Shown piece by piece: positions 13,575 to 42,130 of a DNA stretch of 64,000 nt. Source of the DNA: Amoebophrya sp. A120 (lineage: Eukaryota; Protista; Dinoflagellata); the NCBI GenBank assembly GCA_905178155.1, contig CAJINV010000001.1, forward strand, positions 7,323,794 to 7,387,793, given 5' to 3'. The position numbers and the translations under genes were made by a program. The number at the start of each line of letters is the position of its first letter. Within the stretch, counting starts at the first letter, position 1. The notes below the pieces were generated by a model. It was not told the origin of the DNA and did no database searches. It saw only the letters and a list, made by a program, of their open reading frames with translations.

Positions 13575-14810
13575 ACGTCCGCCCGCCAACGGAGGCGAAA
13601 GTTGATCCAGAGAACTAAACGCACAAAAGATGGCGGAGCAGCCAAAGGGCGAGCGCCAAAATCATGTGCCACGAATTACGCCGCACTAGACCCAGCAAGC
13701 CGCCCGCTTTCGGCGCCGGCAGATGCGCGCCCGCCCTCCTTTGTGCAGCCGGGCAGCCCGCGGCCGGGGCGCCGATGACAGAGCACATGCACCCAAGGGG
13801 CGCGCCTCTGCGCGCGCGGCGGGCGCGCGGAAAAAGCCCGCTTGCCGGGCCACAACGCAAGCGCCCCGCCAGCAGTTTCTGGGGAAACTGACCGCGGCCG
13901 GCCTTCACGAGCACACATCAAAGAAGGGCGGCGGCAAAGGGCGCGCGCCCGGCGGGGCGCGCAGAGAGGGGGCGGGGGGGGGACGGGGCGGCCGCGCAGG
14001 CGGCCCACGCGGCTGCCCCGCAAGGGCGCGAATTCCCCCGCGCAACTTTGGCGGGTTTCTCTCCGACTGGGGGGCGGCCATTGGCCGCCTCCATGGCCTT
14101 GAACTTTTTGCCCGGCGCGGCCTTTTTCACGCGGACCATAATCGCGCGCCGCGGCCGGCAAATCGAAGACACGCCCCGCCGCCTGCGCAGGCTTGGGCCG
14201 GGCGCCCCCCCGCAGACAATGCGCCGGCAGGCACAGGCATTCCGGGGGCCTACCAAAGCGGGCCGCTAGCCCGGCAGGCGGTGCTTGCATGCCCACCACA
14301 ACAAGAGGCCACGCGCGCCCGCCTCGGGAGCCTTGTCCCTGCCGCTCCCGAACGCCGCCCCCCCGCCATCAGGCGGGCGGGCCGGGGGCGCGACGTCTTG
14401 GCGGCCATCGCCGCCTTCCCGCCTGTACTGGAGCCGGTGCCGGCAGACAAAGCAACCAAGCCCGCCCCCCGATCCGGCCGCCCGTCGCGGAGGCGCATGC
14501 GGCAAATTGTCTCAAGCCCTTGGCGCCCCGTCAAAACAGCGCCTGCGCGGACAAGCGCGCCGCTGCCGTGGTCCCGGCCGTTTCGGGCGCGAATCTTCCC
14601 GGCTGCGCACGCGGCCCCTCTGCCGGCGCTTTGAATTTGCTTAGCAATGGCCGCGATACGCATCGCGGAGGCCCGGCCTTCAGACCGCGGCATTTGTTGC
14701 CGTCGTCCTCAAAGTCATCGCCATCCGGGCCGTGAAGCTGCGCGCCTTTGTTGATGTTGTGCGTGCGTCACGTTGCGGAATACTTACACCCCGCGCGGGC
14801 GCTTTTTCTG
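13575..14810 (-). mobile_element. GC-rich decayed DNA-transposon relic, piggyBac-like (boundaries approximate)
   Basis: 73-83% GC in hand-counted lines. Minus-strand fragments in piggyBac order: RPPECLCL (P..lclDE), GKKFKAMEAANG (G.efK.mad..sG), LVKAGRGQFPQKLL (VKta...fP..l). Frameshifts and a stop; no TTAA ends found. Confidence 0.45.
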
Positions 14811-14970
14811 TGCTGGTTGCACTTGAACACAAGACAAACCCTGAGATGTCATTTGCGCCGAATCAGCAGCCGCTATCATGCAGCGAATCAGTTCTGTGCC
14901 GATTTCACTGTACGTGAAGCAGCACCAACATCGTACTCATCATCTTGCTGTCCTCGTGCTATTCTTTCTA

Positions 14971-17316
14971 TCACGACAGCGTTAGCGCGTCAAACAAGTA
15001 CACTTTGAGACACCGCACCAGCCGCGTCACGTCTGCGGGTGTGTTATAGACATACAGACTAACGCGAATGTACCCCGAGCGGTAGCTCGTATGTATGCCA
15101 GAGTTTGATAAGCGCTGATGCGCCTTTTCCGTCGTGATCTTCACACTTGTATCCAGTTCAAAACTCTTCTTACTTTTCTTCATCGCACCGAAGCGCAGGC
15201 CGATGATGTGCGGCGAGTGGTGCTTCGGGTAGGTGATCTGCAGGAATTTGTCGAAGGACAGTGACTTCTTCTCGATTTCGGCATTTAGCTCCCGTATCTC
15301 CTCCTTCAGCTGCTTCATTAGCTCCTCGCACTTCTTTTGAATGGTTTCAACTTTCCAATGGTTGATGATCAAATCCAAACTCGCGAGCAGTGCCGGCATC
15401 ACGATCGGGTTCCCCGGTCGCCCGCCCATGTCTAAACGTAACCCGGCGCCTGCTCGAAACGCCGGCTCGTAGAGGGCTTTTTCAAAAACTTCGCAGATCG
15501 GTGGTTTCTCCTTCACTATCTCGGGAGTAGAGGGTGATTGCGCTTTTGCTTTCGGAGAAGACGGCGAGGCTTTGTTGTTTTTTCCAGGTGAGCCGGTCCC
15601 CTCTTCCTTTTTCGCCTTCTTCGTAGCCGGACCTTCTAGTGGCACCAGGCTCATCCGCGCCGCGTCGGAAAGCGATTTTCTCGCTCTCGCAGCCGCACCG
15701 CCAGCCTTCGCGTTTCCCCCGAGAAACCGCGCAGGGGAAAGTGACTCAACCTCCTGCTCCGAAAGTTCGTCCCTCTTGCCTGTTGCGTTCAGCAAAAATG
15801 GCAAGCAAGCGCCGTCGACACATCCAATCCTGTTCCGCTCGTGGTGGTCTAGAGTTCGCAGCACGCTGTGCGCATGCGAGCTCTTCGTACTCTGCTGCTG
15901 CAAGCTCAAGTTTTTCTTCCGCGAAGAGTTCACGTACATCAAGCTGATCCCGTAGAGCCCCAGCAGCCACTTGTGCGTCGTGCACACAATCGCGTCTGCT
16001 CGGCGAGCTACCGAGCCTGGAACCGGTATGACACCGAGCGACTGGGTCAAGTCGAGCACGAAATAACAGTCCTCCGCCAACTCCGCTGCGACTTTTTGCA
16101 AATCGATCATCCGCCCGTCGATCCACCGGCTCTGCATGAGCGCCACGAGTTTCACGTGCTTTTTCTGCATTTTGTACGCCTGGATCACCAAATCCGTCAG
16201 GTCGTCGTCTTCGTTCGTGGTTTTCACCACGAGGAAATCCACGTCCAGCGTTTGCTCCCGCACCAGCAGCTCCTGCCAAGGGTACACATTACTTGTGTAC
16301 TGCTCCTCCACCACCAGCACGAGCCGCTTGATGGGGTCCAGTCGCGTATCCTATGTAAAAACGTCCCCACCCCATAGTCAAGATGGGGGATTGGCTAGAC
16401 AAACCCACAAGTTTTGGCTGTCTTGCATGACAGATTTGGACTCGTAGCGTAGTGCTGTTTGAGCTAGCTCAGCAGCATCACAGACCTAGTATATCATGCT
16501 GATTGGAGCATGACAAATTGCAGAACACGATTGGAAAATGCTTCTCATGGGGATCCGCATGAGAAACAATTTCAGCATGCAGATTTGCAATACAACTATG
16601 GTCTGGGGACGTTTTTACATAGGATATCGCAACCCGGTGATTTTCCGAACGGTGTCCTCGTTTCTCCACTGCTCCTTATGACATGCAAAAATGTCTGGGT
16701 CTGGAAACTTGTGATGCAAGTCAGTCAATAAGAAATGCAGTGTAATGCGCCACCAAGCATGACAAGTTTCTTCGCGCTTCTGTGCTGCGTATTCCGCATG
16801 AGAAACTGCGTTTTTGCATGACAGGCGAGAGAGGCTGTTTGTGGCCACGCAATACAGAGTTAAGGGCCATGCCAGATCAGCATGACAGATCTCGCAATCT
16901 TCCAGACCCAGACATTTTTGCATTTGATACTCCTGGAAGTTGTACGCCAGCGTGCTCAGGTGCGTGGACGCGGCACTGGCGATCGCAATATCCTCCGGTA
17001 GCGCGGTGGGGATCAATTTAGAAAACAGTTCCCGCAACGGGGTCTCGTCGTCTTCGCCGAGCAGCCAGGGCGACTCCTGCTTGAGGATGGCTTCCTGTGC
17101 GGCCTTGATGCAAAAATGCGGCGAAATGCTGCGGCCCGCGGTGTTCAGCCAAACTGCAGTACTCTGCTCCTGGGCTTCTTGAAATTGCTCTTCGATGCGG
17201 GTGCCCCGTTCTTTCTCGACGCCTTTCGCATTTGCTGCCGTGGAACTGGAACTTTTTGCGGCTGCAGCTCCGCCGCGTGTTGACCCAGCAGGGGCGGCTT
17301 GACGCTTGGGGCCCAT
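14971..17316 (-). CDS. Class-V PLP-dependent aminotransferase / cysteine desulfurase-like; exons 17316-16930, 16671-16627, 16341-14971
   Basis: WLNTAGRS, EQYTSNVYPWQ, VLDLTQSLG, ADAIVCTTHKWLLG (PLP lysine), YIRVSLYVYNTPADV. Frame restored by removing two introners. Confidence 0.88.
16347..16626. mobile_element. Introner element, family B (280 bp)
   Basis: TIR TATCCTATGTAAAAACGTCCCCA; DR TCGCG (16342-16346) / TCGCA (16627-16631); colinear with 59773-60057. Confidence 0.92.
16677..16929. mobile_element. Introner element, family A1 (253 bp)
   Basis: TIR TAT(G/C)A(C/A)ATGCAAAAATGTCTGGGTCTGGAA; DR CTCCT at 16672-16676 and 16930-16934; colinear with 52300-52551. Confidence 0.92.
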
Positions 17317-17789
17317 TTTAAACAAAGATGCTAGACGGGAAAAACCAAATTATCGTGGGATCATTCAAGTTATTTTTACCATAACCATCTTGTCATTCTT
17401 GTTCGAGACGCAAAAGGGTTTATTAGGGGCCTCTCGAGTGACAACGAAGACGGGTCTACTCAGGGAACACTGGTTTTTTTGGTTCGTTACTGCTGTGAGT
17501 GACAGTGAAGACATTCCGGTTGCGCCGATGCGATTACGTTGACATTCTCTTTTCTTGTTTTGGTCTACGTATCTATTACGTTCGTTCGATGAAAGTCTCA
17601 CACTCAAGGGGCGGGCCTTTTTGTGCTCACAACAGGCTTTCACTGTGGGACCAACAAGCGACACCAGTTTATTCTGCGAACGAACGTTGGAATTTGCGGA
17701 AAGGAATCAATTGACAGGCGATAACATCCGAGCGAAGTCGTCAACACCGCCATGACGCAGGCCTGCAACACACCTGGCGAAAGCCCGCG

Positions 17790-19055
17790 CTATTCCGGAA
17801 CCCTAGCGATGGCGTTTTCCTTTTCTAGGTGAACGCCATAAAGCAACTGCTCCAGCTGGTTCCCATCTGGCTGCGCCATAATTTGGTTTTCGATGCGGAC
17901 CAGATCTTTCTCCTTCTCGATTATGGCCTTCTTTCGCTTCTTCAACGTTTCCAAGTCTTGCGCCACGCCTTCGGCGCCACGCGTCAGCCGGACCTGTGGG
18001 TTCATATATTAATTTTCCCTGAGGCTCACCTGATACAAGTCATCGGCCGCAAAAGTCATCTTTGTCTTCACGCGGCAATTAGCGCTGCAAAAACGTCTGA
18101 TTCATACAGCCGTGCCGTCGAAATGATCTTCCCTCTACTTACCGCATATTCCTCCAGTGCTCGGCGGCCGGGACCTTGGCTCCCGGCCTGTTCCGCAATC
18201 TGCTGCACCTGCGAAAGATCATGCTGCAGATTGGCTTTCAGCGCGGTGTTGTGCGCCTCCGGTTTTACCATCCGGACGTGCCGGAGCTGGGCCAATCCGA
18301 CCTCGTGTCTGAGGCGAGCCTGTCGCAGTACCTCGGCGGCTTGGGCACGCTGCTCGAACTCCTTCACCTTAGTGTTTATTTTGCGTTGAGTAGAACTACT
18401 AGAGTCTCACCACGATTCGATGTAACAAAACAACACTTCAAGGAGCGAGAAAACTCATTCCAAGAACAGATTCAAATGATGCGACACGTGCTGCAGAACA
18501 CTTTTAATTCAACATGCACAAATCCAATCCTCGTACAATGCTGTCCTTGTTGATGGCATTCCACTGTTTCTCGGCGTTCTTGACAATTTCCGACGCAAAC
18601 TGGCACACTTTTTGCAGCTTCGGATCGGTGCCTTGTGCGGTGAGTAAAGAGTTCGAGTACTTCTCCAGCACGGTCCGAAACTTCGCTGCGATTTTCGATT
18701 CTCGCCACCGATCAGCCGGAGCCGCTGCTGGACTACTACCTGTGCTTGTTCGCGGTGCGATAGAAGACGAACTACTTGAAGCTCCCCCAATTTGGCCTGG
18801 TATGACATGTTGAAGCGTCTGGTGTAACGGCGTGTTTCCCTCGTTCCCGCTTGGCAGAGCACCACCACCGGATGATGACGAACCGCTGGGTCGCCTGTCT
18901 ATTGATAGAGCCGCTGACGTAGGCCGGTGCATCGGAGGAAGCGACGGAGGTCGCATGCTACCGAAAGAATGACTCGAGGAGCTACCACCCATCGTTAGAT
19001 TTCCCGTAGAAGTCGCTCCACCTCCACCTCCGAAAGCTGCTACAGAGTCCGCCAT
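17790..19055 (-). CDS. Hypothetical protein, S/G-rich N-terminus and coiled-coil C-terminus (3 or more exons; 3' end uncertain)
   Basis: MADSVAAF... joined via GT-AG introns KDSI|VKEFEQ and EEYA|VRLTRG. Confidence 0.65.
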
Positions 19056-19410
19056 AGTTGATGTTTGTTTTTCCTCAGATGCTAGCTCAATCCCTTATTC
19101 TTATTGGAAGTGCTTCTGTATCTATTGCGAAAACAAGGCTGCCAGTGGAGAATGCGAATCTCGTGGACTGCATTACAGCAGTACTATTGATTCCCCTATT
19201 CCATTCTATCACAGCAGTGCCAGTGTCTCCCTTTCCAGAGGTGATCGGCTCGACACTTCTAAGAAAACACACAGCGCTTTTCGCTCATGCCTGTGACAAA
19301 CGACCAGCAAATAAAAAAAGCGATCCGATGAAAACGACCTCGAAAACGATTCGGAACAACGACAGGAGTCCAATCGGTTCTGCAACAACATAGGTTGCTG
19401 CTTATATATA

Positions 19411-21371
19411 CAGTGGGGCTGAATCGATAAAAATCGAACCTGGGCCCCCAGGATCGCCACGGAGGGCCAACGCTGGCAAGTAGCTGGGCTGCCGACGCCA
19501 CGAAGCGGAGTGGCAAGGAAGCAACGGCCAAAGCTGGCGCCCGAAGAACCCCGCCCTCTCGGACCGGGCCCGGCGCCGGCCCACCTTTGCGGACCGGGCC
19601 CGGGACCGGGCCCGATCGCCGGCGGCCTCCCTCACCGGCCAAAGCGGTGGGGGCGCTGCAAGCGTGTTCACCCTGCGGCAAAGTTGCCGCGCTGCGCGCG
19701 CACCCCTGCTAGCGGGCCGGCGGGGCGCTTCAAGCGGCCCAAGGCAAGGAAGCCGAGGGGCGCGCGGCGCGCCGGCCCGGCCTCGCCCGCCGGCCCCGGG
19801 GAAAAGCAAGGGGCGCTCTGCCGCCTTGCGCCACTTAGTGACTGACTCGGTTTGTGTCTGGGCCTTATTTGGCTCAAGGATTTGAGTAAAATACGCAGGA
19901 GATGGAGTCGCAAGATACATGCTGCTTCAACTACAACCCGAAAAAAGACGGGGGCGCCCGGGCCGGTTAGAGCTTGCGGCACGAACCCCCATCGGCCGCG
20001 CTGCCGCGCAACCCCTGCCATTGGGCGGGGGGATGGATTAGCGGCAGAGTTGCGCACTCTCGCGCCCTGGGTCGCGGGCCGCTCCTTTCCAATTTTAAGC
20101 GCTCCCTCCGTCCCCACGAAACAAAGGCGCCCCGCCATGCCGATCCTCTTCTTCCGGAGAATGTCCGCCATTGGCCCCCGGAGGTCGGCCGTGTCGCGGC
20201 ATGCTGGTGGCGCGCCCCGCGGGCGGAATTTCCAAAGGGGGGCCACCGGGCGCGCCCCGCTCCCTGCGTGCCCGTAGCCACTTCGGTTCGGGTGGTACGC
20301 AGCCGCTCCCGCCCCGCGAAGACCCTGCGCCATTTCTGCTCGCAACCTTCGCCCGCCGCCGACTCCGCCAGCGCCACGCCCTGCCTTGGGCTGAAATCCT
20401 TCGCCGCGCGGGCGCCGGCTCTGAAATGGCAGGGCGGAGTGCCGGCACTGGCTTCGACTCCGTATCTTTTCAAGTTCGAGATATATCCCGAAAGGCCCGA
20501 ACCGAATCCAAAAAATTGCGAAAGTTCCGACACACGGGCCACGCCCGCGCCCGGCAGGGAAGCCGCCCGCGCGCGACCGCGCCGGGTTGGCTGTCCGGCG
20601 TCGCCGCCGCCATCTGCGGCAGGCTGCGCGCTGCCTAGCACAGCGCCACAGCAGCAGCGAAATTGCTGGGGGGCGCAGTCTTACTCTCACCTTCTGGACG
20701 GCGAAAACGCGCTGGCAGTTTCCCCCGGTTGGCCGGCAATTTCCAACATTTTCAGGAAAGGAGAATATAACTTCAGGCAATGCCTTGAGCCCTGGCGCGC
20801 TTTCGCCGCGGCCGCTGGAGCTTTTCTACGGCCGCCGGATACAAGTCTCGCCACGGCGAATCTTGTTTCCGCGGAGCGGCGCGCAGGCCCCCCGAAGCCG
20901 CGCACCGAAAACACTGCGCGACCAGACGGGCCCGGCCCCCGTGGCTGCTAGCCGGCCGCATACGAAGGCCACAGGCGCGCCCGCGAAAACATTCGCGCGC
21001 CCCCGCTACTGCTTTGGGAAAATGAAGAATCTCGGGGGGGCGGCAGGAGGCTTGCGGCTTGGGCGCATTTTGCCAGAAAATCCCGGCCCTTCCGTCCCTC
21101 GGAATGGGGTCGATCGAATACCTCCAAAGCAGCAGCGCACTGCGCTGCGCAGCAGGCGGGATTTCCGTCCACTTTGATGGCAACAGAGCAGCAACGCCCC
21201 GCCTTTCACCCGCTCGCGCCGCGGCTCGTTGGGGGCCACCGGCATCCCCCGCGCCCGCCGTCCAGCAGGCGCCACACCTTTGGCGCTTTATAGCTTTCCC
21301 TTATGTTGAGAAAAAGCAATCAACAAGCACCACTCGCAACCCGTTCGATTTTTTTCGATCTCGGTCATGCT
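19411..21371 (-). mobile_element. GC-rich decayed Tc1/mariner (IS630-Tc1-mariner) transposon, about 2 kb
   Basis: TATATATA followed by CAGTGGGG (typical Tc1 end). 19423-19439 matches 21343-21359 inverted at 16/17. Minus-strand ghost motifs in order: HTH-like/FSPRQ, RLCFVGTEG (FsDE), RWGF..GPGAPVFF, SPAYFTQILEP, LLFPGAG (FqqDg), RLPCLGPLE (SPDLNPIE). Confidence 0.65.
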
Positions 21372-21865
21372 TTCTTCGACAGAGGGGAACACGCGTTGCT
21401 TCTTTCTCGGTATACTCAGAGGACAACTCAAAACGATTTCCCAGAGCGAGTTGCTTTCTATCTTGTATATCTTCCGTGCGGGTGAAAATTGAAATTCGAA
21501 ACGCAGGCAGAAATCGGAAATTATTAGTCGCGCGATATCAAAACGCTTTTTTTGTCATTGCCATCCTTCTTGAACATTTTTCCTTCTTCCTGTGTCATCC
21601 TGGTGGGTCGCTGTTGTAGTCGTCTTCGTTGTAAGTCTCATATCAGAGAAAAATTGTGAGACCGCTAGCCGCTATGATCTTCGTTATCGTTGTACTTGTC
21701 GAAGTAAAAGTAAAATCCGGTATTGGATTGCCTCTGGTCTTCCACCGGTGTCGCACGACTTTTATCCGTTTACCAATACCAACATATCATAAGCATAACT
21801 TTGTAAAAATTTTCTACACGAAAACACGCTACACATTGTTCATCCCAACATCATTCGCTCCTTTT

Positions 21866-23014
21866 TCACGACCGCAAGTTGAGGGAAAATTCGACCCGCT
21901 GCAGCTGCGGCGGAGGCGGAAGTACCGGCGCCGCGGCACGCGCTGCCGCCTCGAAGGCCTGATCCACGGGCTTCCGACAGCTGGGACAGTGTCCCTTGTT
22001 TCGGAGCCAGGGGCGAATGCAGTCCGCGTGGAAGATGTGGTTGCAGGGCAGGATCAGCAGCTGCGGCAGTAACTCTTGCGTGCAGTCTTCAAAGCAAATC
22101 GTGCACTGGACCTTGGACTCTTCCTCCGTCCTCCCAGGAAAATCCGCGGCCGTAGGGCACGGCAGCGTGTCGATCACCTTCGGGTCGGCCGCAAATTTAC
22201 CTACGTCGATGGAGGTGATGTGTGTGCCGAGTGTGCCATTTGCCCCCAACTGCAGCTGGTTTGAATCCCCACCGCCGGCGTCGTCGCTAGCCGAGCTGGA
22301 AATCGTGCTGTGCACGTCCCAGATGGCGCCGGTCTGGTCGGTGTACGTAGATGAGGAGGAGTCTCCAGAGCTTGGTGTCTGTTGTCGACTCACGTTGCGT
22401 GTTGCGACGCTGCTGCTGTTCTCGACTCCGTCTGGACGCGGTTCTCGCCGCGCCTCACGAGACCTGTGGGAAGACGACTGCAGTTCCTGGCGGGCGAAGT
22501 TTGCGATTTCCTCCCGGATTACCTCGCGCAAAACGTCCCGAACCGTCGTGCCGCGCGGCGCCGAGCGCGGGGCCGGCGCCGACGCGGGGCTCGGAAGGCT
22601 TGCGGCGGGGGGGCTGCGTTGCTCGTAGGAACTGCGGTAGTTGTTCTGCTGCTCAGGTGCGGGTGAGGGAACGGCAGGCGAGGTGTGGTTGCTGCTGGTG
22701 TTACTAGTGGTCAGCCTGCTGTCGGGAGAGGCGGCAATCGTCGATGGTCGCGTACTAGATCGGAAATTTTGTTGCTCCCGCTGGTTTTGATTGAAATTCG
22801 AACTCGCGGAAGCAGTCGGTACAGACGCCGGGCCGGGTCTTTTGGTGCTGTTGCGGCAGAGCTCGCTCTTGCAGTGCCGACAGAGGTAGTCGTGGGGATC
22901 GTTCATCGTGCGGGTGCCACTAGGCGAGTTGTCGGCCGTCACGCTCCGGGCAGGGAAGTACCGGTCCCGGACATCGCAATACAGCATGCCCGGAAGCTCG
23001 CCGCGAAACGGCAT
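21866..23014 (-). CDS. RING-H2 zinc-finger protein (putative E3 ubiquitin ligase)
   Basis: CTICFEDC..LPCNHIFHADCIRPWL..CPSCR. Likely start MPFRGELPGMLY at 23014; may extend to 23548. Confidence 0.85.
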   Translation of the reverse strand: MPFRGELPGMLYCDVRDRYFPARSVTADNSPSGTRTMNDPHDYLCRHCKSELCRNSTKRPGPASVPTASASSNFNQNQREQQNFRSSTRPSTIAASPDSRLTTSNTSSNHTSPAVPSPAPEQQNNYRSSYEQRSPPAASLPSPASAPAPRSAPRGTTVRDVLREVIREEIANFARQELQSSSHRSREARREPRPDGVENSSSVATRNVSRQQTPSSGDSSSSTYTDQTGAIWDVHSTISSSASDDAGGGDSNQLQLGANGTLGTHITSIDVGKFAADPKVIDTLPCPTAADFPGRTEEESKVQCTICFEDCTQELLPQLLILPCNHIFHADCIRPWLRNKGHCPSCRKPVDQAFEAAARAAAPVLPPPPQLQRVEFSLNLRS

Positions 23015-23046
23015 GGTTATCGGCGCGGTTGTATTGCTGAAATCTA

Positions 23047-23548
23047 TTAAATGGCGTGCTTCTTCAGCTTCTGCTTTCGTCGGGCGCCTCGTCGATGGTG
23101 GGTCTGTGTATAATGTGTAAAGGCGATAATTTTCTCTTTGTCTTTCATGATAAGGCTCGAAAATAATAATCAATGAGACTTTGCTTACAGTTTCATCCCC
23201 AACCCGGAAACTGAATACAAAGGAAAAGCACATGATGTAAATGATAGCGTGCACGCACCTGACAATAGCCAGCAGCGGAGGTGGAAATGGGGATGATGAC
23301 GTTGTTATTCGGCGTTTTGCGGCTAAGCTGCGGCTGCAGCTCTCCTAGTACGCGAAAAACAGCTTTTCCCGGACGTAGCGCAGCCAGGACCAGAACGGAA
23401 AGATGGAGGTTTGGTAGTAGTTGGCCAGGTAAATCAGGTTGCGGATCACGAGGAAAAGGAACAGAAACCACATCAAAAAATCTGTGAACTCGAACGCAAC
23501 GACCTGTTGCGCGTCGATGTTGAACAAGTCAGACAGGGCGGTGGACAT
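23047..23548 (-). CDS. Small two-TM hypothetical protein, or the 5' exons of the RING gene
   Basis: MSTALSDLF..hydrophobic segment; a 93-nt GT-AG intron removes an in-frame TAG and joins CVHAIIYIMCFSFVF; a second GT-AG intron would end the protein at KLKKHAI*. Confidence 0.45.
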
Positions 23549-24221
23549 TGTTTTGTTTTTGGTGATGTCGCTGGCTGCGAAGAATGCTTCTTTGGCTTTA
23601 CAGGAATAAAGAAACGGTGTGCTCGAGACCGACGTCGTACTAGGTTCTTAGATGTGGACGAGGAAAACTAAACAGCGAACTTATGGCTAGTGATGAAAAT
23701 TTCTGTCATTACACGCGAAGATGAAGACGTAGCGATCTACTTCTACTTCTTACTTACTTGTTGTCGCCCGGACGAACCTCCACCTGTTTAGAGTTTGTCA
23801 TACATCGGTGAGACGCCTTGTTGTACTTGGCGCAGTGCTCAGATGTCATTTCTCGGAGATGGCGATTATGATCTCGTGACAATTTCAGATTGTTGAAGAT
23901 CCTTTTCAGGAGACCAATTTTGATCATCATCCATGCGAAAGATACGATCTAGCCTTCATCATAAGCGTGATTGGAAACAAGAACACCGACTCCAGTCATA
24001 GTTGAACCTGAGATGAGCTTGTTTTGGCGTTCTTCTTCTGATATTTTCCGATCCTAATGATCTACGCTAGATTTAGTCAGATTTCTTTATCGTGTTTGAG
24101 TTTGCTTCTGTTTCCTTGTCATCCTCATTGTCATGCTCATGCCCCATACTTTTTTGCAAAGAAAGGCTGGGTCCCACCAAAGCTAAAAACTGCGGGCACT
24201 TAAGTAGTACTTTTCGAAATG

Positions 24222-29968: not shown

Positions 29969-32355
29969 TTTTCTTGCGGCGAGGCGAAGGCAAGATACAC
30001 GTATCCACGTGACGCAGAGCACAGGCGACAGCTTTCAAACGCCACTCCGTGCAGCGACCATCTCTGTTTGTCCTTCCACCGAGTGCACTTCTCTTTGGCG
30101 CGATACGAATCTACACAAAGATATAAACAGAAGCTTTCTGCTAAGTGTCAGTTATGAGCAGAATTGTTGACAAGATAAAGAGCTCCACCTACTGGAAACG
30201 CATCAAAAATCCGCTGGTGCTGTCAATTCAAAACACTCCTCCAGATGGTGTCTTCAGGAAAACGCAACAGGTCCGACTGCAGCTTGTCCATCAATGCTCA
30301 ACAAAGCACACCGATAGCACTTGCTTTCATAATTTTCATTTTTCACAAACTCGTACATTATTATTTGCATCTAGATTTACAGGTTCGCAATGACACCTCA
30401 ATTCGTCGTACTTGTAGTGACGACGGGTAAGCAACATTACCGAGCGAACGAAAATTTCGATTTTTTGGAGAGCGGTCGAAGGGACACAAGGATCGGGGAA
30501 CACCGCCGCGGGATCGTGTGCTCGGTGGGAACTTCCTTATAATAATGATCGTTTTTTTGCAAAAGAACGCCAATGGATCAGCAGGGTGTGATCTTGAAAA
30601 TCTTTCCGTTTCTTAGTCTACAGGGTCGTTTGTGATCACCTTTCGATGCAATACATAAACCCTACTCTACATAAGTAAAACGTTAACGTTACAAATGCTG
30701 CTCCCTACAACTCTAGAACAAAAGTAGAACTAATTCTGGAAGAGTTTGTTGCAAATGCACCTGCATCAGGCTCAGATCTTCTTATTGTCCATACGTGGAT
30801 GTAAACATCGTTATAGGTTGATCGTTCGTCCGAGCTAGTTCCTCTGCCTAAATGCATAGGCAAGAGAGCTCGACTCAATGAATCTTTTGTACTTAATGCA
30901 AGTTGATCATCTACTTCTTGACTTTAGTCATTCGGCATCATCTTCGACCCGGGATTTTCTGAAGCACCAATTCCGAAATTATCGTGGGCGCACGCTAGTT
31001 ATCGGCTGCTGACCTGATGTGAGAGATCTGGATTAGTTACCAACCTTCATCGTGCTGTCATCTGATCCCCGGTCCGATTTCGTGATCAATCTGCGTGCCG
31101 TGCTGCCGGGACTTTATGAGAAACAGTCTCCACAATCGTCTCGTGGTGGCCTGCTGCAGCTCCGACCTTGCTCTACTTCAATTTCTTTCTTCTATTATCT
31201 CGCTTGATGCGTGAAGGCTATCACGTTGCAAGCTGAAATTTCTTCGACGGCTAAATGCTGTATTAGGGTCGAAAAGATGGCTAGAAGAAATCTGAGTCGA
31301 AGTATTCGCTGAATGGAATTTTTACCTACATGTCACGGACCGATACTCTAGTCTAACTATACTCCCATAGAATTATCGTGATGATGACAAAGTAAGTAGA
31401 AAGAAAGGTGATCTCACTTACGGATAAGTACATCAAAAATCGACCTCACAGACGCGCTGTCCGTCCTAGTTCTGGGCTAGTACGGAGACGTCGTAGAGGT
31501 CAGGAAAGGCGTATGTTGCTTCGCCCTGGCGTGGTTGTGTGTTTTCATATTCTATCGTCACTATTTCACTTCGATAAATAAACCTCTGTCGCGTGTGTCG
31601 TCGCTTCGTCTGTCGAGGCTATTCTTGTCTGTAGTTTGGTGATCAATCCACTATAGAACTTTTTCATAAAAACGAGCGCGGTTCATTTTAAAACTGCACC
31701 TGTTTGATGGTGTTCTGTTCCCTGCTGTCCATGGCGTGGCGCAGCAGTCATTTAGTCTTTCGATTTAACTTCTAGCATGAAGAACTGATGTTGGCAGATC
31801 AGATGAATCAAGTGTACTAATAAATCAAAGGCTGATGGAAGGTTGAAAGTTTTCGGCACGGATACTATGACAGACGTTGTAAAAAGAGTATAAGAAAAAT
31901 GGAATAAAAGGTCGTAGAAATAATCACCCATATTCTCGTACGCCTCACTGTGAACTTGTTCTACACTTAGAATGCCAGGAACATATAATTCAAGGCACCA
32001 ACACTACTACGTTATAATTTGGTCGGCTGCTCAACCTGTTCTGTTCGCAGGATATCAATCTCCTTGCGTGAGAACCCAACCAAGTACAGCGTGTGACTTT
32101 CTTCACTGAACTATGAACCTTAGTCACAGCCGAAAGTGTAATAGAGCAGCTAGAATCTCTATGTTTCATCTTCTCCCCTGTTACACTGGCAGAGGATGGC
32201 GCTTTTGTGCTGTGCCTCTCGTTCAGACACTGCACCATTGGTTTCTAGTCTATTTAACACTAAACCCGACAAAAGCTTTGTCTTTCCGTTCTTTATTGCT
32301 GACAATGTCCTTAAAAGGTAACTTCTCGCGGTGGCGGCGGATGGCGGTATGTAAT

Positions 32356-35300
32356 TTACCACTGGCCTCCGGACTGGTTGCCGCCGGTAGGTGCGGACAG
32401 TAGAGCAGCGAGTGCGGAGCCCAAGTCGCCGTCACTCATCGAGCTGGCGCCCTGGTTGCTGTTGTTGTTGTTGCCCCAGTTGTTGCCTTGGTTGCCCCAG
32501 TCGTTCTGCTGCTGCGCCTGAGAGTAGTCTCCAGATTTGTCTTGTTGTCCTTGAAGAACCTATGCGTCATATCATGTGGAAAAAAAAATTGAAAATAATT
32601 TCTACCATGCGTGTCAAGCCCAAGCCCACGACTTTTATTTCTCCCCTATTTTTGCCCCGGCAGTGCTTTACCGAAAAAGTAGATGCGCATCAACGACCGA
32701 AAAGATGAGAAAATTTCATGCCGACTACAAATTCTATCAGGACTCTTGCTTTTCATCATGATGCAACCGATGATAAATTCACCATCTAGAGTAGTTGTGA
32801 GCAAATATGTAGTGGATTCTCATTCGTTTTCTTGCTCTAGTATAACAGACTTTCTTGTGACACAGAAGAAACAGTACACATCGAAACACGGACCTTCTTC
32901 ATCATCACCGAAAAGAAACCGACCTTTGCTCATTCCGGTCCAAGTAGCACCAACCCACCACACCGACCAACAACCGATTTGCGCAATTACCGGACCAACG
33001 ACTTGCGATTTCCTTTTTCTGTTTCCCAGCCGAACGATGAAGAAACAAAACGAAAAGCAACGAACCCGAGACGAAACTGTTTCTTTTTACTACGCGTTGT
33101 GCTTGTGTTGAAAAACTGTATACCTGGTTGAAGACGTTGGCCCACCAGTCGCCATCGTCCTGGTTGTAGTTTTTGCCGCCCCCCTTGTTGCCGCCACCAT
33201 AGGGTCCATGGGTGTTATACCCCTTGCCATTGCCGCCCTTGCCACTACCGCCAGTCGGACCGTAGTATACTTCTGGCGTGTGCGTGTTACCGCGATCGAA
33301 GCTACCGGAGCCACCGTAATGATCATCGTGGTAGCTGTTGTGCCTGATATAGAGTTGTGAGTTCTTGGTCGAGATGACTTCCGTGGTGTTCGAATAGCCG
33401 CATTCCCTGCTGCACATAATTGCCAAACGATACCGATTGTGATGCTACCACGTAAAGGGAATTTATTGCGGAAAAAAAATAAGTAAAGCAAGCAGCTGCG
33501 TGGAAGTACCCCTTGTGGTGGTGGTAGTTGTTCATCTTTCCTTTTCCCTTTCCCTTCTTGCCGTATCCACCCTTGTGGTCGCCGCCCTTTGGCCCGTTGG
33601 CGTCGAGCTTGGCAATCGCTTGGAAAAGGTTTTGCGTCATGTCGGCCTTCAAAGCGACAATATCATCCATATCGTTTCCGGTAATCACTACCGATGCGGC
33701 AGCGCCGTTGTCGTCCTGGTTAACGCGGATCGCCATGTCTCTCTCTGCTGCGTATTGTCGAAATCGTCGGATCGCCTCACCCTGCTTGCCCACTAAAAGG
33801 CCAACGTATTTTTGCGGCACCTGCGGTGAAGGAGTTTTTGGATCGCGGAAAAATATGACCCTGCGTTTTGCTTTGCACTTGCCTTGCTTGTCAATCAATC
33901 TGCCCATGTTGAGAATTATCGTACGAGAGACGAGCGTATTTTGCAGCAAAAAAAACCCTCTACCTCGAAAGTGTCAGAAAGCGTGTGCTTTGACGCGTCA
34001 ACGAATGCAATTCCCTTTCCGCTTCCGCCCTTGATGCCGACACCTCCTCCAACGAACCCTCCTCTAACTTCTCCATTATCACCAACCTTTCCTCGTGGTG
34101 TGTAGCCCATGTCTTTCCCTTTACCTGTTTGATATGTTATTTCGGAATAAACTTGGTTTACGAAGGACAAGACCACCGCTCCTCGGCACCAGAGCCGACT
34201 CGCAGCATGGATTGTGCTTAAAATGAAAATTTTGCATGCAATGCCAAATTTGCAGCAAAGTTCCTTGTGTGCTGTCAATAATCATGTTCTTTTCCATGCG
34301 AAAATGTAAATGATCACTATGAGGCTGACAAACATAAGAAAACATCACAACATCGCATGTGCAAGCACATGGTTCCATGGAGAGGGGCCAGAGTTAACAT
34401 GATCTCCTTCCTCCCGTTAGATTCTATACCGTGGTATCCACCACCTCCTCCCTTATAACCACTATTCCCACCATGATGGTGGTGATGATCCTGATCCCCC
34501 TTACCTGATTTGTGGCCCTTTGACGGGGCGGACTTCCCGCCATGCGGGTGGTCATCATCCTCCAAAAACTCCAGTCCCGGCATCTTATCCGGCTTGAACG
34601 GTGCGGCAGGCACTAATCCCGCTTGCACATTCTTCAAATACTCTTGGTACCCCTCGGACGCTTGTCTCCCCGACACAACCATTTTCGAAATTACATCCAC
34701 GGTTTTGTCGACCTGTGCGTTTTCACGTTAGTACAGGGTATATAAATGCTGGATTTCGTTTCTTCAAAAAAGGATCCAGCATCTCGATCTCCTACAACTA
34801 GGTATAATTCTCATTGCAGCCTAGTAAGGAGCCGTAGCGCCGCTACGATCGTATAGTACCTGCTCTAAGCTTCCAGAGACGTGTGCGACGGAGAACCCAT
34901 CGTTAGCCGTTTCCTGCATGACTTCAATGGATGCGCCAGTGTGCTTTCTTATTTTCTGGAGCGTCACCCCCGCTGCGCCAATAATCATACCTGAAGAAAT
35001 TTCCGTGTATTTACTTTGCAACGTGAAGCTGCTGTATCCCTAATAAGTAGCATAGAGCAAAGAATTCAGATGCGTATAATCATGACGGAGCGTTATAATA
35101 ATAGCCCGTGAAAAATCCACCCAAAGGTAATTGCAAATCAACTTAATCTGTGAGCCACATACCGACGTATTTCTGCGGGATCTGCACTTCCTTGGAGGCG
35201 TTCATTTTTGATTCTTCGGAGAGAGTGTCCACTTTTGCCTTGCACTCGCCGACGGACTCGTCGGTTTCGCCCCGAACGGTGCAAACGGAGTATCCCTTCT

Positions 35301-36829
35301 CTTTGGTCTCCTGGTTAATCGCGATGCTGCACGCGAAGTTTGCCTTCAGCTCGCGAATCGTCGAACCTAGCAAGCGATAAATTAATTTCATTTGTCTGTC
35401 GCCCGAAGTTAGTGGTCTGGCGCTGCTACTGAAATTCTAGAGCTCCCTTTTCGACTTCCTCCTCTTACAGCTGGCGAACTACCGGGTCGGCTGATAAGCA
35501 CCGTGAGAGAAGAAGATGATGCGTGTTGCATTAGTGTTGCCGGCGAGGGTCCCTGGCAAGCTATGTATTCCGCAGATGGTCGCGACAGCTTCGTCTTCCG
35601 TGGCTGTGGGTACTTAGGTAGTTGCTGCTTCCGTAGTTTTTTGATACTCGCAGTAGTTCGTTGAGCTGCTTTCTGCCGTCCTTTTTTCTTTGCTGTATTT
35701 TCGGTCGTGTTGTTTCTTCGAGAACGCCAACCGTTCTTCCGTTTTTCAGCGAGCACCGCCTTTCAGGTGATTCGCCGCCCCGGTTCTTGTTTCTATGCGC
35801 TTTCAAAGAGGGCTTTCGCAAAGCACGATATGCACGCTCAGTGCTATGAAGCAGGCTCGTGGTTGCCCACACAGAGATGTTTTTTCGGATCTTCCCGATT
35901 TTGATTTTTTCTTGAAAGAACCGGAGCTTGACTAACACCATGCATACACAAGCCAGATCGAGCTGATCCACAGGGCAGAAAAACATGCAAACCGCAACTG
36001 TTACTCTAGTTGCGGATATTGACGTTCTTGTCATTCATAAATGTGAAACTACACATCGCGCCCGTCAAAAAGATCCTTCGGCTGCGTCCAGTTTCTTCGT
36101 GCTGTGAACGCAATAAAGGTAGAAACGAGCCAGAAACAAAAGATCTTGCTTCGCACTATTGCTGCCATCCCGATCCCTCTAATCATCGTCGACTGAGCAG
36201 CGTCGAGCGGGATCAATCTTAACTGGCGCGCTAGCTCCTTGTATATTCACATAAATACCCGTGGTCCGGTCGGGTTCGATCTCCTTGATCAACAACTACT
36301 TGTCCTTGTGCGCGATCGCAATCAATGCATGACATCAGCTGTCACCAATTTTTTACAAATTCCCATGGATCAGTCTTCAATAACATTCTATGCAAACCGG
36401 ATGGATAGATACAGGGACAACATCATCTTCCTCTCTCACAGCGCCGCTCGGCCCTCCGGATGATCGCATAGCACAACGCGCCAGTTGCAGGAGCTCGTTC
36501 TAACTTTAATCTAAAGGGAGCTTTGTCATGATCATCATCATTCGGGCAGACGGGTATATTAATTAGCGGTAGAATTTCAATTTCTTCAAAATCATCTTTT
36601 ATCACATTTGAATTTTTCGGTTGGAAGTTTCTTGTCGCGTTTTGACGTTGTAGTACTAGATCAATCAGTATCAGTATCAAAAGCAAAAAAATAGCTAACC
36701 ATCGGGCCCGATGATCCTGGGCACGCACGATTGCGGGATGGAAAAGATCTTCACGACGGAGCCCATAGACTCGTCGTCGACGGAAAAGTCCTGCACCTGC
36801 GGACTCTGTTCCTCTTGCTGCTCTGCCAT
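32356..36829 (-). CDS. Three-KH-domain RNA-binding protein with GKG-rich low-complexity regions (about 8 exons)
   Basis: IPQSCVPRIIGPDG|STIRELK, IPQKYVG|MIIGAAGVTLQKI, VPQKYVGLLVGKQGEAIRRF. Exon 1 is 36829-36700; last exon ends GGQW* at 32356. Confidence 0.85.
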
Positions 36830-38536
36830 TTTGCCAGAAATTTTTTCCGAGAAGCTGTGATCACGGATGGATCGCTACTTCGAGATCCGGTCGTGACAAA
36901 AGATCTACTCTTGCGTGCTGTCTCTGCGGCTCCCAGGCAGTGGTCTCGAGTCTGATTGATGATCCAGAGGGTCCCCGATGAGGTACTAGTACCAGGTTCC
37001 GTCTGATGTGTGATGTGATCCAGTGGAGTGGTCTTGTTCAAGCGTGATCTTTTTCAAGAGTTGCTTCTTTCTTGCTTTGTCAATAACGTCTACTTCTGGT
37101 CTTCTAGGCAGCTGCTGTACAACACAACAAATGCTTATCTTCTAGAAATGTTATCGGAGAAACAGATTGTACGGTCGAAATTATACGCTTTGTCGATGAA
37201 TAGCTCACAGTTAATATTCTTGTCGCGCTCTTGTTCTTCGGAATAAAATTAGATTAGTATCCAGATGCCACGTGTTCACAGGTCGAGAATTCTACAGAAA
37301 ATATCTAAAGGTTGAAGAGTTCTTGTGCGTTTCTTCCGACAGAGAGCGAAAGAAAAGTAGTACCAGTTGTAGTTGAAAGATTGCCAAGCAGCTTAATCGA
37401 AGCGAAAACCCGATCAAGTTTTGTACAAAACAAGATCAGACTCACAGCGAAAAAAGCCGGTCCCTGTATCAATTTGGTGGAATAGGATCCACAGCGCGCG
37501 TAACTCAGTGGTGATTTGTGGCCTTTGATCAAATTTATTTGCTTGCGATGTGTGTCTGTCGATTTTCAGACGCGTCTGGATCTTTAGAGATTTGGTATTT
37601 GGATCAAAATAGCAGAAAGAGGTTAGACTTGAACTAACAACCGACTTTTGTTCTTCTCAATCAGCGTTAATAAATCAAGTTTCCTTCTGATTTCGATCGC
37701 TACAATTTGCTCGAACTTGTGGGATCGATTTCTCGATTTCAAAGTACAACTGCTAAAAGTTTTGCTAAATACGAAAGCTAAATTTTTTTGCTGCTGCTGG
37801 AAAAAAAACCAATTTCAATCACAATTTTACAGCGTATAACCAAGAACCTCTCTAAACTACTAGATATCAAAAACAAAAGTAAAAAAGACGAAAGATTATG
37901 AAATTCAAGCACTACGTTTCGGTTTGGGGGAAGGCTCTCTCTGCAGGCATTTCATTCAGTATGGGAATTATGCTCTACCAAAGAAATAAGCCACAGGACA
38001 CACCTTCAATACCGTATAAAAATCTACTGCACCATACAAAACAAGCATGCCTACTGTTGATAAACCGATCGCTCATCTTGAACGGGCTTCTTCATCACCT
38101 GACGCGGCACCGAGCAAAAAAAGGTCTATCACTCAGCCTCAGCTCGTCAAGTAGATCAATTTCAATGCGCAATGCTTACAGAAGATCCTCTGATCAATAT
38201 ATAACCCGATTTCATCTACTATTAAAACTTATTCATTGGAGTATGTCTTCTCACTGATCGCCGACCACTAGCAGGCTGCGGACTCACTCTTTGCACTGCC
38301 TTGCAACAAACCGATAAATTTCTGCTTTCTCCGCGTGAGATAGGGTGGACCTTCTTTCTGCATAATTTCTTCGTCTCTAAAATTCTTTCAAATGAACAGT
38401 CTCGACCACCGAAATCAAGAGAGCCCTCAAGGCGCCGTTGCTCAGTCATGAAATTACTTATTGTCGCACAGTCCTTGATCGTGAGTCTTTTCTAGCTAGC
38501 TAGGGCCGCAAAAATAGCGCATCGACCAAGATGAAA

Positions 38537-40945
38537 TTACCCATTTGTCAAGCGACCGAGCGTAGTTTGCTTCTCATGCAGCAACATGTGCAAGCGATGG
38601 CTCTCGACGTCGTGCGCCCGCTCCGCAGCCTCTATTTCTTGCTGCAGGGCCTGAGCCTGCGAGCTCAGCATCTGCTCCCGAAAGCGCAAGAGCTCTAGTG
38701 CCGGATCGTCCGAGGGCAAGGCTTTCAGCTGTTTCTGCGTCTCCAGGACATGGGCTTTCTCGCGGATGTCTGCCACCAGGTTTTTGATTTTCTCCTGCAT
38801 CGACCCCAAAGCCACCTGTACGTCCTCCCGTTCTGCAGCTAGTTTCTGCTCCGTTTCCTCCAGTTCCGGCTTCAGCGCTTTTGTGATTTTCGTGCACAGT
38901 GTGGCATTCTCTCCGCGCAGCCGCAGCGTCTCGATTCGATCGATTACGGGCATCACGGAAATCTTCGCGTCCTTCTCGTTCGCCTTTCCGAGCGCCCCTG
39001 TGAGTTCGTTAACTAATCTTATGCAAGAATAAGAGTTATAACTCATCACCTTCACCTTCAACGGTTGCGCATATGAATATTTATGGCGGTTCTACAAGAA
39101 CACTCACTGCGAAAAGCAGAAATATTTCGGTCTTTGAAAAGCAGAAACGTCGAGGTGCCTATACCATTCTCTATGACGAGTCCCTTGTCGATCTGTTGAA
39201 TTCGTGTCTGCAGTTGGTTCACAAGTTGGTCCTGCTCCTGGGCTAATGTCTTCAGCCGCTCGCATTCGCTGTGACCACTTTTGTACTCCGCCCGGACGCG
39301 CTGCCGCAGCTCCACGAGAATCTCTGCCAGCTGCGCGACTTGCGTCGGTGTCCGCAGGGAGTCTTCGCGAATCTTCTCGCACTTCTGGTGCACCGAGAAC
39401 AGCCGCACGAGATTCTCCCGGGCTTTCTGGTACCGGGCGTCGCAGCACTGCATCTTCAGGTACAGGTCGTGGGGGTTGTTCGAGCCGGCGAAGTATAGGT
39501 CCACGTCCACTTCGGTGAGATTATGCAATGCAAAAGCATCGCACTAGTATAAATTGCATTACAACTTAGCCCAGCATTACAAATTAAATTTGTAATGCTG
39601 ATTTACTTTGAAAAAGAGATTTGTAATGCAGAAATGCAATTACAACGAGTACGATACTTTTGCACAGGATAGAGATCGGGGAACACCAACTCCTGCAGCT
39701 GCCGCTCCGTCCGGTTGTTCTCGTCCAAGAGTTGCAGCTTTTCCTGCTCGAGACGCTGTTTCTCGTCCTTCATGGCGTCCAAGGCGATCCGCCCATCGTT
39801 CAGCTTTTCCAGGATCTTGGCAATTTCCTCCAACTTCGTCGCGTTGCGGTACTTCAGCTGCGCCGTCCAATCTTTCTCCCGCGGCGTCTTCCGGATCCGC
39901 CGCAACTCGCCGATCTGTTGTCCAGGTCATACGGTTGATGTTCTCCTTCCCGCAGGAGTTAGTACTTAAGTATGTTTGTTTGTCACGCTAGTCTGGAAAA
40001 GCAAAAAATAAGCGAAGCAACTCCAGGAACGGTATTAGAACATGACAACCGCCCCCGTACTACCTGCATCGTAAACGGGTACGCCCCTTTTGCGAGCTCC
40101 TCGTTTTGCCCAACATCATCCGAATGCACTGACGGAAATCCGATACTGCTGAACCGGTTTCGCACAACTGCGCCATCGCGGTCACCACTCCCAGGGCGGT
40201 CTGACGGGACCGCGGTGAGAAAAGTGGCGGTTTCATCGGCATCCAAATCAAACCGTCGGGCTTGGAGCGCTTTGACCAAAATGTTGTGTCGCCCCTCCAC
40301 GAAGTAAGACACCACGTGCGGCGTGTGCACAGGCTCGATTTTCACCGTCAGGGAGAGCACCGGCAAGTCGGAGGACGTCGTGAACGTCTTCCGAAATATG
40401 CAGGGAGTTTCTGCTACGTCGCCCGATGATGTACTAGTACTTGCATATGCACTCGCATTGTATCTCCAGGAGAAACAGAGCACGCGGTCGTCCGCTTGCT
40501 CCGCAAATTGTCGGTAGACGTCCATCCATCTGCTGTGGTTGAGGTGCAGCCGTTCCTGTGCCTGCTGCGACGAAGCCGGACTGGCGCTAATATCCTCGAC
40601 AAGAAGCTCCTGCGGAATAAGCCACAGCTGGAACTGCGTCTCCGGCTCCGCGAAGTAGTTCTCTGTAGCAGTGGCATCTGCGTTTTTCTCCTCGGGAATT
40701 CGTGCGACCCGCTCGAAAAAGATGCGGTCCGGCCGGAATTTCGGTAGCAGGGTTGGTCTGCGGAAGTGCAACCGGTCCACCTTGCGGGGGGACTCCGCTT
40801 CCTCATCCTGCTGGGTGCAGACGAACAGCTCGCGCCGGTCATTGTCATTCGGGTCCTGGGTTCCGCCCCGGTCGAGAACGAGCAATAGTGTAAAGAATTC
40901 CGGTCGCCGAAGCCGCAGCTGCTCAATCTCAAATGCGCACAACAT
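38537..40945 (-). CDS. Hypothetical protein with C-terminal coiled coil (4 exons, one introner); start uncertain
   Basis: ORFs join as FTMQ|IGELRR, FPDL|TEVD (introner) and IEN|GALGK. Confidence 0.65.
39522..39671. mobile_element. Introner element, family D (150 bp)
   Basis: Imperfect TIRs TATGCAATGCAAAAGCATCGCACT / TATCCTGTGCAAAAGTATCGTACT; DR GAGAT at 39517-39521 and 39672-39676; internal 14-bp palindrome 39572-39600. Confidence 0.85.
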
Positions 40946-41289
40946 CGATCATCTTGCGAAGCAGTGAGTCAAGTCGGCAAATCGTGATTGCTGAAAATCA
41001 TGAAAATATTTCCACTCAGGGACAACTAATTCGTGCTAGCGGTATCTTTAAAGGTGCCTGGGCCAAGCGATATTCGGCTCTGCGAAGGACTGCAACATTT
41101 GCGTTCTCTCTTCCCTCCGCTGATTATTAGACTTCACTCAATCTCAATCTCAAATCATCTCCTTCACAAAAATGGTGCAATCGACACTGCGATCACATCG
41201 ATCGCCGAAATGCAGTGGCTTGCTGCTGAACAGAATTCGTCAAAGCTTCGACCATGATCATTTCCAAAACCTTCGCCCGCTCTGTGTCG

Positions 41290-42130
41290 CAACACCACTG
41301 CCCGTATCTCAGGGCCCGAACCCACGAAGGCCACGGGGGCGTTGGCTGCGAAGGAACCGGCAACCACCTGGCATGCCCGGCGCCTGGCTAAAGGTCGCGC
41401 GCACATCGCTCAGAAGCCGAATGCAGGCGCTGCGCGGAAGTGGCCCGCCCATCCACCACCGGCTTCGGGCCGGGGCCGGGGCCCGAAGAAACCTACTTCC
41501 CACCCAACGCGGGCCCCACTTGCAGCCCGGCGGAGGGCCAAAGGCACTGCGAGCGACTTGGGCGCCCTTGGCGATCAGCCTGATAGGCCGCGGCCGCGCG
41601 CCCCCCGCCAGCTAAGCCGTGCCGCCGGGGGCTTCAGGTGCAGCCATACTCTGGAAGCATTCTGGCGCAGCCGCCCCCCGCGCTTCAGCGGGGGAGGGGA
41701 AAGCACGCGCAACCTTGGGCCCCGGGGAGAGCTTGAATACCATTCCGCCGCATCGATTGACCCCGTGCATCCGTTGTCTCGGCGTCGTGGTCTTCGGGCG
41801 TATGGGGCCCGATACCGCCAGACCCCACAGGCCCCAAAGCGCCACGCCCTGCCGCTTCATTTGTTCGCCCGGCCAGAATCGCGGCGCGGGGCCATGGCAA
41901 TGAGCCGCGAGTCGTCCAGCGGAGCGTGCGCAGTCCCCGCCCTTGAAACCACAAAACCGCGCGGCCGTCTGCCGCACCTGCGGCCACAAGGTGTCGGGGG
42001 ACCGTCCTGGCCTGGGCATCGACAACCAGCGGCGTTCGAGCTCCGGGATGCCCGGAATAAGGAAGGCGCCGCGGAGGGCCGGCCTGGCGCGCCAGGCGGT
42101 TTTTCGGCATGCGCACCAAATGGCCTAGGA
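41290..42130 (+). mobile_element. GC-rich decayed element, possibly Merlin/ISXO2-like transposase relic (boundaries approximate)
   Basis: 73-78% GC in hand-counted lines. Plus-strand SGRGRGPKKP ... AKGTASD ... GGFRCSHTLEAFWR resembles ISXO2 GRGRG..K / pGt.i.sD / GvhTntiEgfW. Confidence 0.35.

Follow-up and report, generated by a model that had tools for sequence, protein, structure and literature searches.

The 64,000-nt stretch of DNA analysed here (the window; G000:C1:7323794-7387793) is part of the 115,520,608-base assembly of Amoebophrya sp. A120, and the genome-wide searches described below cover 115.5 Mb. The window has a mean GC content of 52.1%, and its minus strand carries every large open reading frame (ORF) with codon periodicity, so that its genes form a single co-directional run. 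Three spacers of this run, each 1.9-2.6 kb long and flanked by two minus-strand ORFs, hold islands of GC-rich DNA. A first-pass annotation had interpreted the islands as relics of three unrelated DNA transposons, driven to extreme GC by a defence resembling fungal repeat-induced point mutation (RIP) in reverse. Here we report that the islands are real and non-coding and that they share a dinucleotide signature, and we propose that a local, context-biased, GC-ward process acting on some dead DNA is a plausible part of their history. The islands and their associated features are as follows (window positions; dinucleotide values are observed/expected ratios).

13575-14810, no strand assigned: GC island 1, with a GC core at 13661-14660 (72.7%); single-copy and non-coding, situated in the intergenic spacer that separates two minus-strand ORFs; covered by RNA contigs at depth 3-7; AC/GT 0.54, AA/TT 2.26, GC 1.34.
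19403-21371, no strand assigned: GC island 2, including the inverted repeat at its borders; core of high GC at 19441-21300 (67.8%); single-copy insert; no codon periodicity; RNA contigs at depth 5-7; carries the dinucleotide signature.
19423-19439, plus strand: left arm of the inverted repeat that bounds island 2; 17 nt, preceded by TATATATA and CAGTG; 94% complementary to the right arm.
21343-21359, minus strand: right arm of the same inverted repeat; one mismatch to the left arm.
41290-42130, no strand assigned: GC island 3, 70% GC, with a GC core at 41301-42120 (70.0%); left ~590 nt without identified origin.
41870-42165, minus strand: putative LINE-like (long interspersed nuclear element-like) ORF fragment in the right part of island 3; frame-broken and 88% identical to locus L004; the homology extends ~35 nt beyond the GC edge.

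The cores were delimited by composition scans, and at the island borders GC falls from about 0.7 to about 0.45 inside 50-100 nt. The islands are as sharply bounded as originally described. The reported 73-85% GC is correct for the hand-picked 60-nt lines, and the five hand-counted lines (50, 51, 47, 24 and 28 of 60) proved exact, but the figure does not extend to whole islands, which in the coordinates of the first-pass annotation average 70.4, 67.5 and 69.7% GC for islands 1, 2 and 3, respectively. The surviving A/T does lie mainly in AA/TT runs: AA/TT is found at 1.6-2.7 times the expected frequency, and isolated A/T account for 31-34% of the A/T bases of the islands compared to the 46-53% expected. 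The count of seven TA dinucleotides in 13681-14700 was also accurate; however, TA depletion is nothing special, as the observed/expected ratio is 0.43-0.58 in the islands and 0.59 genome-wide. In pairwise comparisons islands 1-3 were no more alike than shuffled sequence, consistent with the earlier impression that they are mutually dissimilar, and comparisons with 34 reverse transcriptase (RT) loci likewise remained at noise level, no better than shuffles.

Codon periodicity is absent from islands 1-3, compared to a range of 0.2-0.4 in the adjoining ORF, and this rules out hidden protein genes or bacterial DNA. Rfam and tRNA searches of the islands gave no match, and no flanking target copies of 34-43 bp were found at the islands. 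At four-fold degenerate sites the host genes of the window have 59-72% GC, with more G than C on the sense strand, a skew that recurred in all five of the islands considered below.

To rule out an artefact of assembly or basecalling, we compared the region with two DNA runs made from one sample and with one RNA run. Each DNA run contained 95-96% of the sampled words of 13500-21400. Contigs from these runs matched 14000-16371 and 16906-19999 without a single difference or gap, an agreement that takes in island 1 from position 14000 onwards and the initial 600 nt of island 2. The matching contigs are 7.5 and 22.6 kb long and by their length extend across the remainder of islands 1 and 2. Their depths (43-44x and 22-27x) equal those of the flanks, as expected of single-copy DNA. 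An artefact of assembly or basecalling was therefore rejected.

The third run can be recognised as RNA because one of its contigs skips two introns. Its contigs show that islands 1 and 2 are weakly transcribed: depth inside them was 3-7, compared to 12 in the neighbouring gene and 0-3 in parts of a 449-aa ORF. Read-through of a polycistron-like array would account for this signal.

Each island had been said to retain transposase motifs in the right order. When 49 stop-free pieces of islands 1-3 were searched against Pfam at a cut-off of E <= 1, no transposase was found and the sole matches were to three unrelated families with E values of 0.19-0.92. The 20 pieces from island 2 matched no transposase family, such as DDE_3, Transposase_1 or HTH_Tnp_Tc3_2, giving only DUF2576 (E = 0.19), and ten pieces from two further islands gave insignificant Pfam matches only (best E = 0.029). 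The supposed Tc1 remnant fared no better: no island contains a string that differs from SPDLNPIE or one of its variants at three positions or fewer, and DDE_3 (PF13358) has 0 matches in the whole genome. Islands 1 and 2 have no genomic relative at the DNA level, nor at the protein level, where one frame of each was searched. The islands thus lack transposase homology and a DNA-transposon ancestry is unsupported. Whichever of the readings below holds, no annotation should list the islands as three decayed DNA transposons.

At its edges island 2 bears some likeness to Tc1/mariner relics. It starts with TA and CAGTG, and the 17-nt inverted repeat, with its single mismatch, coincides with the GC edge on either side; none of 300 shuffles of the flanks reached the score of this repeat. 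Unlike such relics, however, island 2 has no transposase remnant and its end and repeat are unique: neither the repeat arm nor the CAGTG-bearing end has a second copy in the genome. The outer 12 nt of the left end, CAGTG included, have no mirror at the right end. The left flank is TA-rich, and a matching right-hand TA junction or target duplication is not evident. Because the repeat is significant but its arm and end are unique, we regard island 2 as a single-copy insert bounded by an inverted repeat and outside any detectable family.

A common signature emerged from the dinucleotide content of five unrelated, non-tandem islands, namely islands 1-3 and two on contig C2. In strand-symmetric counts AC/GT is depleted (0.54-0.72), AA/TT is in excess (1.6-2.3) and the GC dinucleotide is raised (1.19-1.34). 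For comparison, AC/GT is 0.97-1.05 in intact transposable element (TE) ORFs of 63-66% GC, 0.84-1.02 in host ORFs and 0.91-0.99 in AT-rich DNA, all clear of the island range, and neither the TE ORFs nor the host ORFs carry the signature. The trinucleotides GAC/GTC (0.52), ACC/GGT (0.51) and ACG/CGT (0.59) are all scarce in the islands relative to controls (~0.95), and AAA/TTT stands at 3.9. In a genome sample of 214 kb, non-periodic blocks with GC >= 0.68 occur about once per 25 kb and make up 5.2% of the sequence. The signature was detected in 14 of 532 scanned segments, 12 of them on the five islands and the other two on a minisatellite with a 41-nt unit.

This minisatellite is degenerate (75% matches) and lies at L047:9380-10000 plus L048:1-300 (G000:C5:4009380-4010300). 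An origin of islands 1-3 from tandem repeats was considered and rejected: Tandem Repeats Finder revealed no tandem structure in them, and the core motif of the 41-nt unit is not enriched there. We also considered the possibility that the islands are dead exons relaxed to the equilibrium of synonymous sites. This fits their composition (GC of 0.59-0.72 at four-fold sites; third-position equilibrium GC of 0.74), but it is weakened because ApC is not depleted at the four-fold sites of host genes.

The sole identifiable ancestry among the three islands lies in island 3, and it is most likely not that of a DNA transposon. The right ~300 nt (41870-42165, minus strand) are 88% identical to L004 (G000:C48:10622-12274), where the matching sequence opens an intact ORF of 551 aa. 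The copy in island 3 is disrupted by an insertion of 4 nt and a deletion of 8 nt, so that it is spread over three frames; the same upstream 40 nt are common to both loci. The L004 ORF belongs to a family with 14 genomic matches, of which three have in-frame stops, and one member lies inside an open frame of 2049 aa (L051+L054, G000:C12:511212-517358). Members of this family are GC-rich by nature (60-65% in total and 0.72-0.79 at third codon positions), and over the stretch matched to island 3 L004 itself has 64.7% GC. The stop-bearing, pseudogene-like members keep a normal periodicity and are uninformative. The conserved segment of the family starts with SFLGHL, and the tail of the L004 ORF looks AP2-like by eye.

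Pfam searches of the L004 ORF and of the 2049-aa frame gave no domain above the cut-off, and protein-level database searches for the identity of the family drew a blank. An exhaustive search did turn up the protein P0001, in which the family segment occupies residues 1315-1396. Some 190 residues upstream of it, at 987-1123, P0001 carries a weak RVT_1 match that falls short of the cut-off (18.6 bits, E = 0.0016). P0001 and the 2049-aa frame are collinear, with 41% identity across 676 aa, and their alignment contains what may be endonuclease-like and RT-like motifs, recognised by eye only. Since P0001 bears a weak RT match and is collinear with the family, the fragment in island 3 most likely derives from a divergent retroelement of LINE-like type. 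Like other non-LTR (non-long terminal repeat) fragments, it falls in a multi-copy ORF family in which some copies bear stops and whose long members are collinear with a weak-RT protein. It differs from them in that the family is very divergent and the fragment is only ~90 codons long.

Comparison of the island 3 block with L004, a single 300-nt pair with 109 A/T and 180 G/C sites, revealed a direction of change. Sixteen differences run from A/T to G/C (weak to strong, W>S) and four in reverse (S>W; p = 0.012). At L004 codon positions 1, 2 and 3, W>S and S>W differences number 3/1, 8/0 and 4/3, respectively; the excess at positions 1 and 2 indicates that these former positions were driven too. 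Judged against four or five outgroups from the family, it is island 3 that has changed at I>R, V>A and L>R. The changes also depend on context: A:T>G:C transitions are found at 7 of 34 ApC/GpT sites compared to 4 of 75 other A/T sites (odds ratio 4.6, p = 0.033). Both the polarity and the context bias therefore hold in island 3.

As a general rule, the proposal that long transposon DNA is mutated from A/T to G/C did not survive. There are 106 RT matches in the genome, and the 30 RT loci examined have 51-66% GC. Among RT copies 3.7 kb long and 74-99% identical, the differences in the two directions number 225:225, 147:145, 123:123 and 198:226; four of seven pairs are within ~15% of symmetry and two closer pairs are more uneven. 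Polarised triplets of RT copies gave an equilibrium GC of 0.74 at third and 0.51 at second codon positions, an ordinary coding pattern, and across unrelated RT families the third-position equilibrium is 0.66-0.79. Kilobase-long retroelement copies thus show no comparable GC-ward drive over all positions.

Some TE sequence is GC-rich from the outset. Some intact TE ORFs have 64-70% GC across kilobases, and island E (L049 8861-10000, G000:C5:4028861-4030000), a tandem array of 70% GC, matches the 5' part of an RT-bearing element on another contig (L017:1-640) at 97-100% identity. Island E is therefore a natively GC-rich, young part of a retroelement. Natively GC-rich, near-identical copies had been named as an outcome that would refute the defence; such copies exist for island E. 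The suggestion that short intronic repeats are spared is compatible with the data: AT-rich introner-like repeats, which are short, show no GC drive and tend to an equilibrium of ~0.5 GC, a result that fits "short repeats spared" and "most DNA unaffected" equally well.

We put forward, tentatively and as somewhat short of an even chance, the following account: the islands are dead pieces of DNA, partly GC-rich from the start, that subsequently underwent local GC-ward substitution biased to ApC/GpT. They would be functionless non-coding segments (dead inserts, or fragments of genes or TEs) lying in the spacers of a co-directional gene array that is transcribed by read-through. A share of their GC-richness would be inherited, as from a LINE-like parent natively of 60-65% GC. 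A:T>G:C changes would then accrue, preferentially at A before C, which is T after G on the other strand. Isolated A/T would be lost, GpC would rise and the remaining A/T would lie mainly in AA/TT runs, giving 68-73% GC and no codon periodicity. The cause may be a local mutational bias, arising for example where these segments are poorly repaired or copied with errors.

In mismatch-repair-defective Escherichia coli, A:T>G:C transitions dominate and occur at 5'NAC3'/5'GTN3' (Foster et al., bioRxiv 10.1101/346874). The base change and nearest-neighbour context of this escape spectrum are those of the depletion in the islands and of the changes in island 3; the ApC/GpT deficit of the five islands, GAC/GTC at 0.52 and the odds ratio of island 3 all agree. 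Because ApC/GpT is the known context of escape from mismatch repair, we think a local mutational bias likelier than a programmed system directed against transposons. The two situations differ in that the bacterial spectrum is genome-wide, whereas the islands need confinement to kilobase-sized segments of a eukaryotic genome.

Several observations weigh against this account. Islands 1 and 2 are without any relative, and for this reason their history cannot be read; we infer both the mechanism and that the same process made these two islands. The evidence for polarity comes from the single 300-nt pair, with 20 informative sites, and 5 of its 16 W>S changes are transversions, a class not expected from the mismatch-repair-escape spectrum. 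The 41-nt minisatellite, with only 56-59% GC, also bears the signature, so that the signature could come from repeat units and not from mutation. Conversely, island B and two GC-rich tandem arrays lack it. Finally, the context rule is carried from E. coli to alveolates by analogy.

One alternative explanation is that the islands are ordinary, natively GC-rich non-coding DNA, such as old repeats, non-coding parts of TEs or decayed minisatellites, and that the signature merely reflects their source. Island E and the intact GC-rich ORFs are precedents for this, the parent of island 3 was already GC-rich over the matched stretch, and the sharp edges, with the inverted repeat at the boundary of island 2, have the look of an insert. 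We consider this explanation, the main competitor of our account, unlikely, since it leaves the 16:4 asymmetry and the ApC/GpT enrichment of island 3 unexplained, the natively GC-rich intact ORFs do not carry the signature, and islands 1-3 show neither tandem structure nor enrichment of the 41-nt core motif. It stays alive, however, because the minisatellite bears the signature and because the polarity evidence is thin (one pair, 20 sites). Stable hotspots of GC-biased gene conversion, in which G/C alleles are favoured in tracts of 1-2 kb whatever their sequence, would also produce kilobase-scale W>S evolution of non-functional DNA and a GC-rich synonymous equilibrium, as in the conversion tracts and GC-rich recombination hotspots of yeast, birds and mammals. 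The size of the islands (0.8-2 kb), a W>S bias in which 5 of 16 changes are transversions, the third codon positions of unrelated RT families and the match between island composition and the four-fold sites of host genes are all consistent with such a fixation bias. On the other hand, the island edges are abrupt and not graded, a strong ApC/GpT context effect is no known property of biased conversion, four-fold sites do not carry the signature, and sex and recombination are undocumented for this parasite. We therefore judge gene conversion improbable as the source of the islands.

The proposed "reverse RIP" would be a programmed defence that recognises transposon DNA and converts A/T to G/C, for example through thymine modification (5-hydroxymethyluracil, 5hmU) or an adenine deaminase. 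In its favour, the changes in the retroelement fragment are directional and context-specific relative to an unmutated copy (in this one pair), the signature is common to unrelated islands, and short introner-like repeats are spared. In core dinoflagellates repeats are marked with 5hmU (PMC11572971, PMC11071213), older work places 5hmU in TA and TC contexts, and the genome has two sub-threshold Tet_JBP matches; these links to 5hmU are contextual only. Fungal RIP similarly ruins a mobile-element copy by directional changes in a dinucleotide context, shifts its composition and appears to spare short repeats. However, RIP changes C:G to T:A at CpA, while the islands show A:T>G:C at ApC/GpT, and neither a dependence on duplication nor a link to a sexual cycle is shown for the islands. 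Nor is there a general action on duplicated or long repeated DNA: kilobase-long RT copies, diverged and truncated ones included, have ordinary GC and are not driven, most long retroelement copies are untouched, and near-identical GC-rich parts of TEs are present. Only island 3 has a detectable TE ancestry. Islands 1 and 2 are moreover single-copy, so that a trigger that senses repeats has nothing to sense, and the 5hmU data come from core dinoflagellates, none from Amoebophrya. A TE-directed defence of this kind is not shown by these data, and we regard it as very unlikely. We also give very little weight to the idea that the islands are functional GC-rich elements under selection, for instance genes for non-coding RNA, spacer or processing signals, or elements serving chromatin or replication. 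RNA contigs on islands 1 and 2 reach depths similar to or above those of the neighbouring ORF, the islands are placed regularly in the spacers of a co-directional array, and the sense-strand excess of G over C is seen in each of the five. Function is difficult to reconcile, though, with the lack of any Rfam match or of a sequence common to the islands and with the broken retroelement piece in one of them, and read-through of the array accounts for the RNA.

A bolder form of our account is a long shot: Amoebophrya would have a localised ApC>GpC / GpT>GpC hypermutation regime, confined to kilobase-sized dead or foreign segments that make up ~5% of the genome, as a GC-ward counterpart of RIP that erases inserts until they are unrecognisable. 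Such a regime could stem from marked chromatin, for example 5hmU-modified, that is shielded from mismatch repair; alternatively, an enzyme may act on A or T in these segments. If a local GC-ward process with ApC/GpT specificity is real, it would explain why ~5% of a compact parasite genome is anonymous DNA of 70% GC and why most repeats of the genome resist classification. It would also be one of the few eukaryotic examples of a mutational bias restricted to certain regions, and one that can be tested against DNA modification and repair. If, on the other hand, the islands are natively GC-rich old repeats, the result amounts to an annotation note only.

The two Tet_JBP (PF12851) matches are at G000:C1:13511038-13511472 (E = 8e-6) and G000:C9:385277-385516 (E = 3e-4) and, judged by sequence, are candidate genes for thymine or cytosine dioxygenases.

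Other GC-rich or repeated sequences were encountered in the course of this work. About 5 kb upstream of the window, G000:C1:7316834-7319033 is a 2.2-kb tandem array of 70% GC whose copies are 68-81% alike and which does not carry the signature. At L046:777-857 and L046:2247-2310 there are short dispersed repeats of 60-80 nt, with at least 8 and at least 14 copies, respectively, at 81-90% identity. One of these falls within an island of 73% GC, the other immediately beyond its edge; a GTGAC...GTCAC hairpin is present in the first.

A further RNA run, X9 (2026, labelled as the same species), matched only a high-copy repeat within 14000-19999, at 95-99% likeness, which suggests another strain or a very shallow run. 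Between islands 1 and 2, positions 16347-16930 form a composite AT-rich repeat of 584 nt and 46% GC, with a summed word depth of 10^5-10^6 compared to 43 in its flanks. Many contigs link its end (16929/16930) to its start (16346/16347), some without intervening letters, which suggests head-to-tail copies, circles or an artefact of the repeat graph. Sub-parts 1-280 and 331-584 of this repeat are found separately at other sites.

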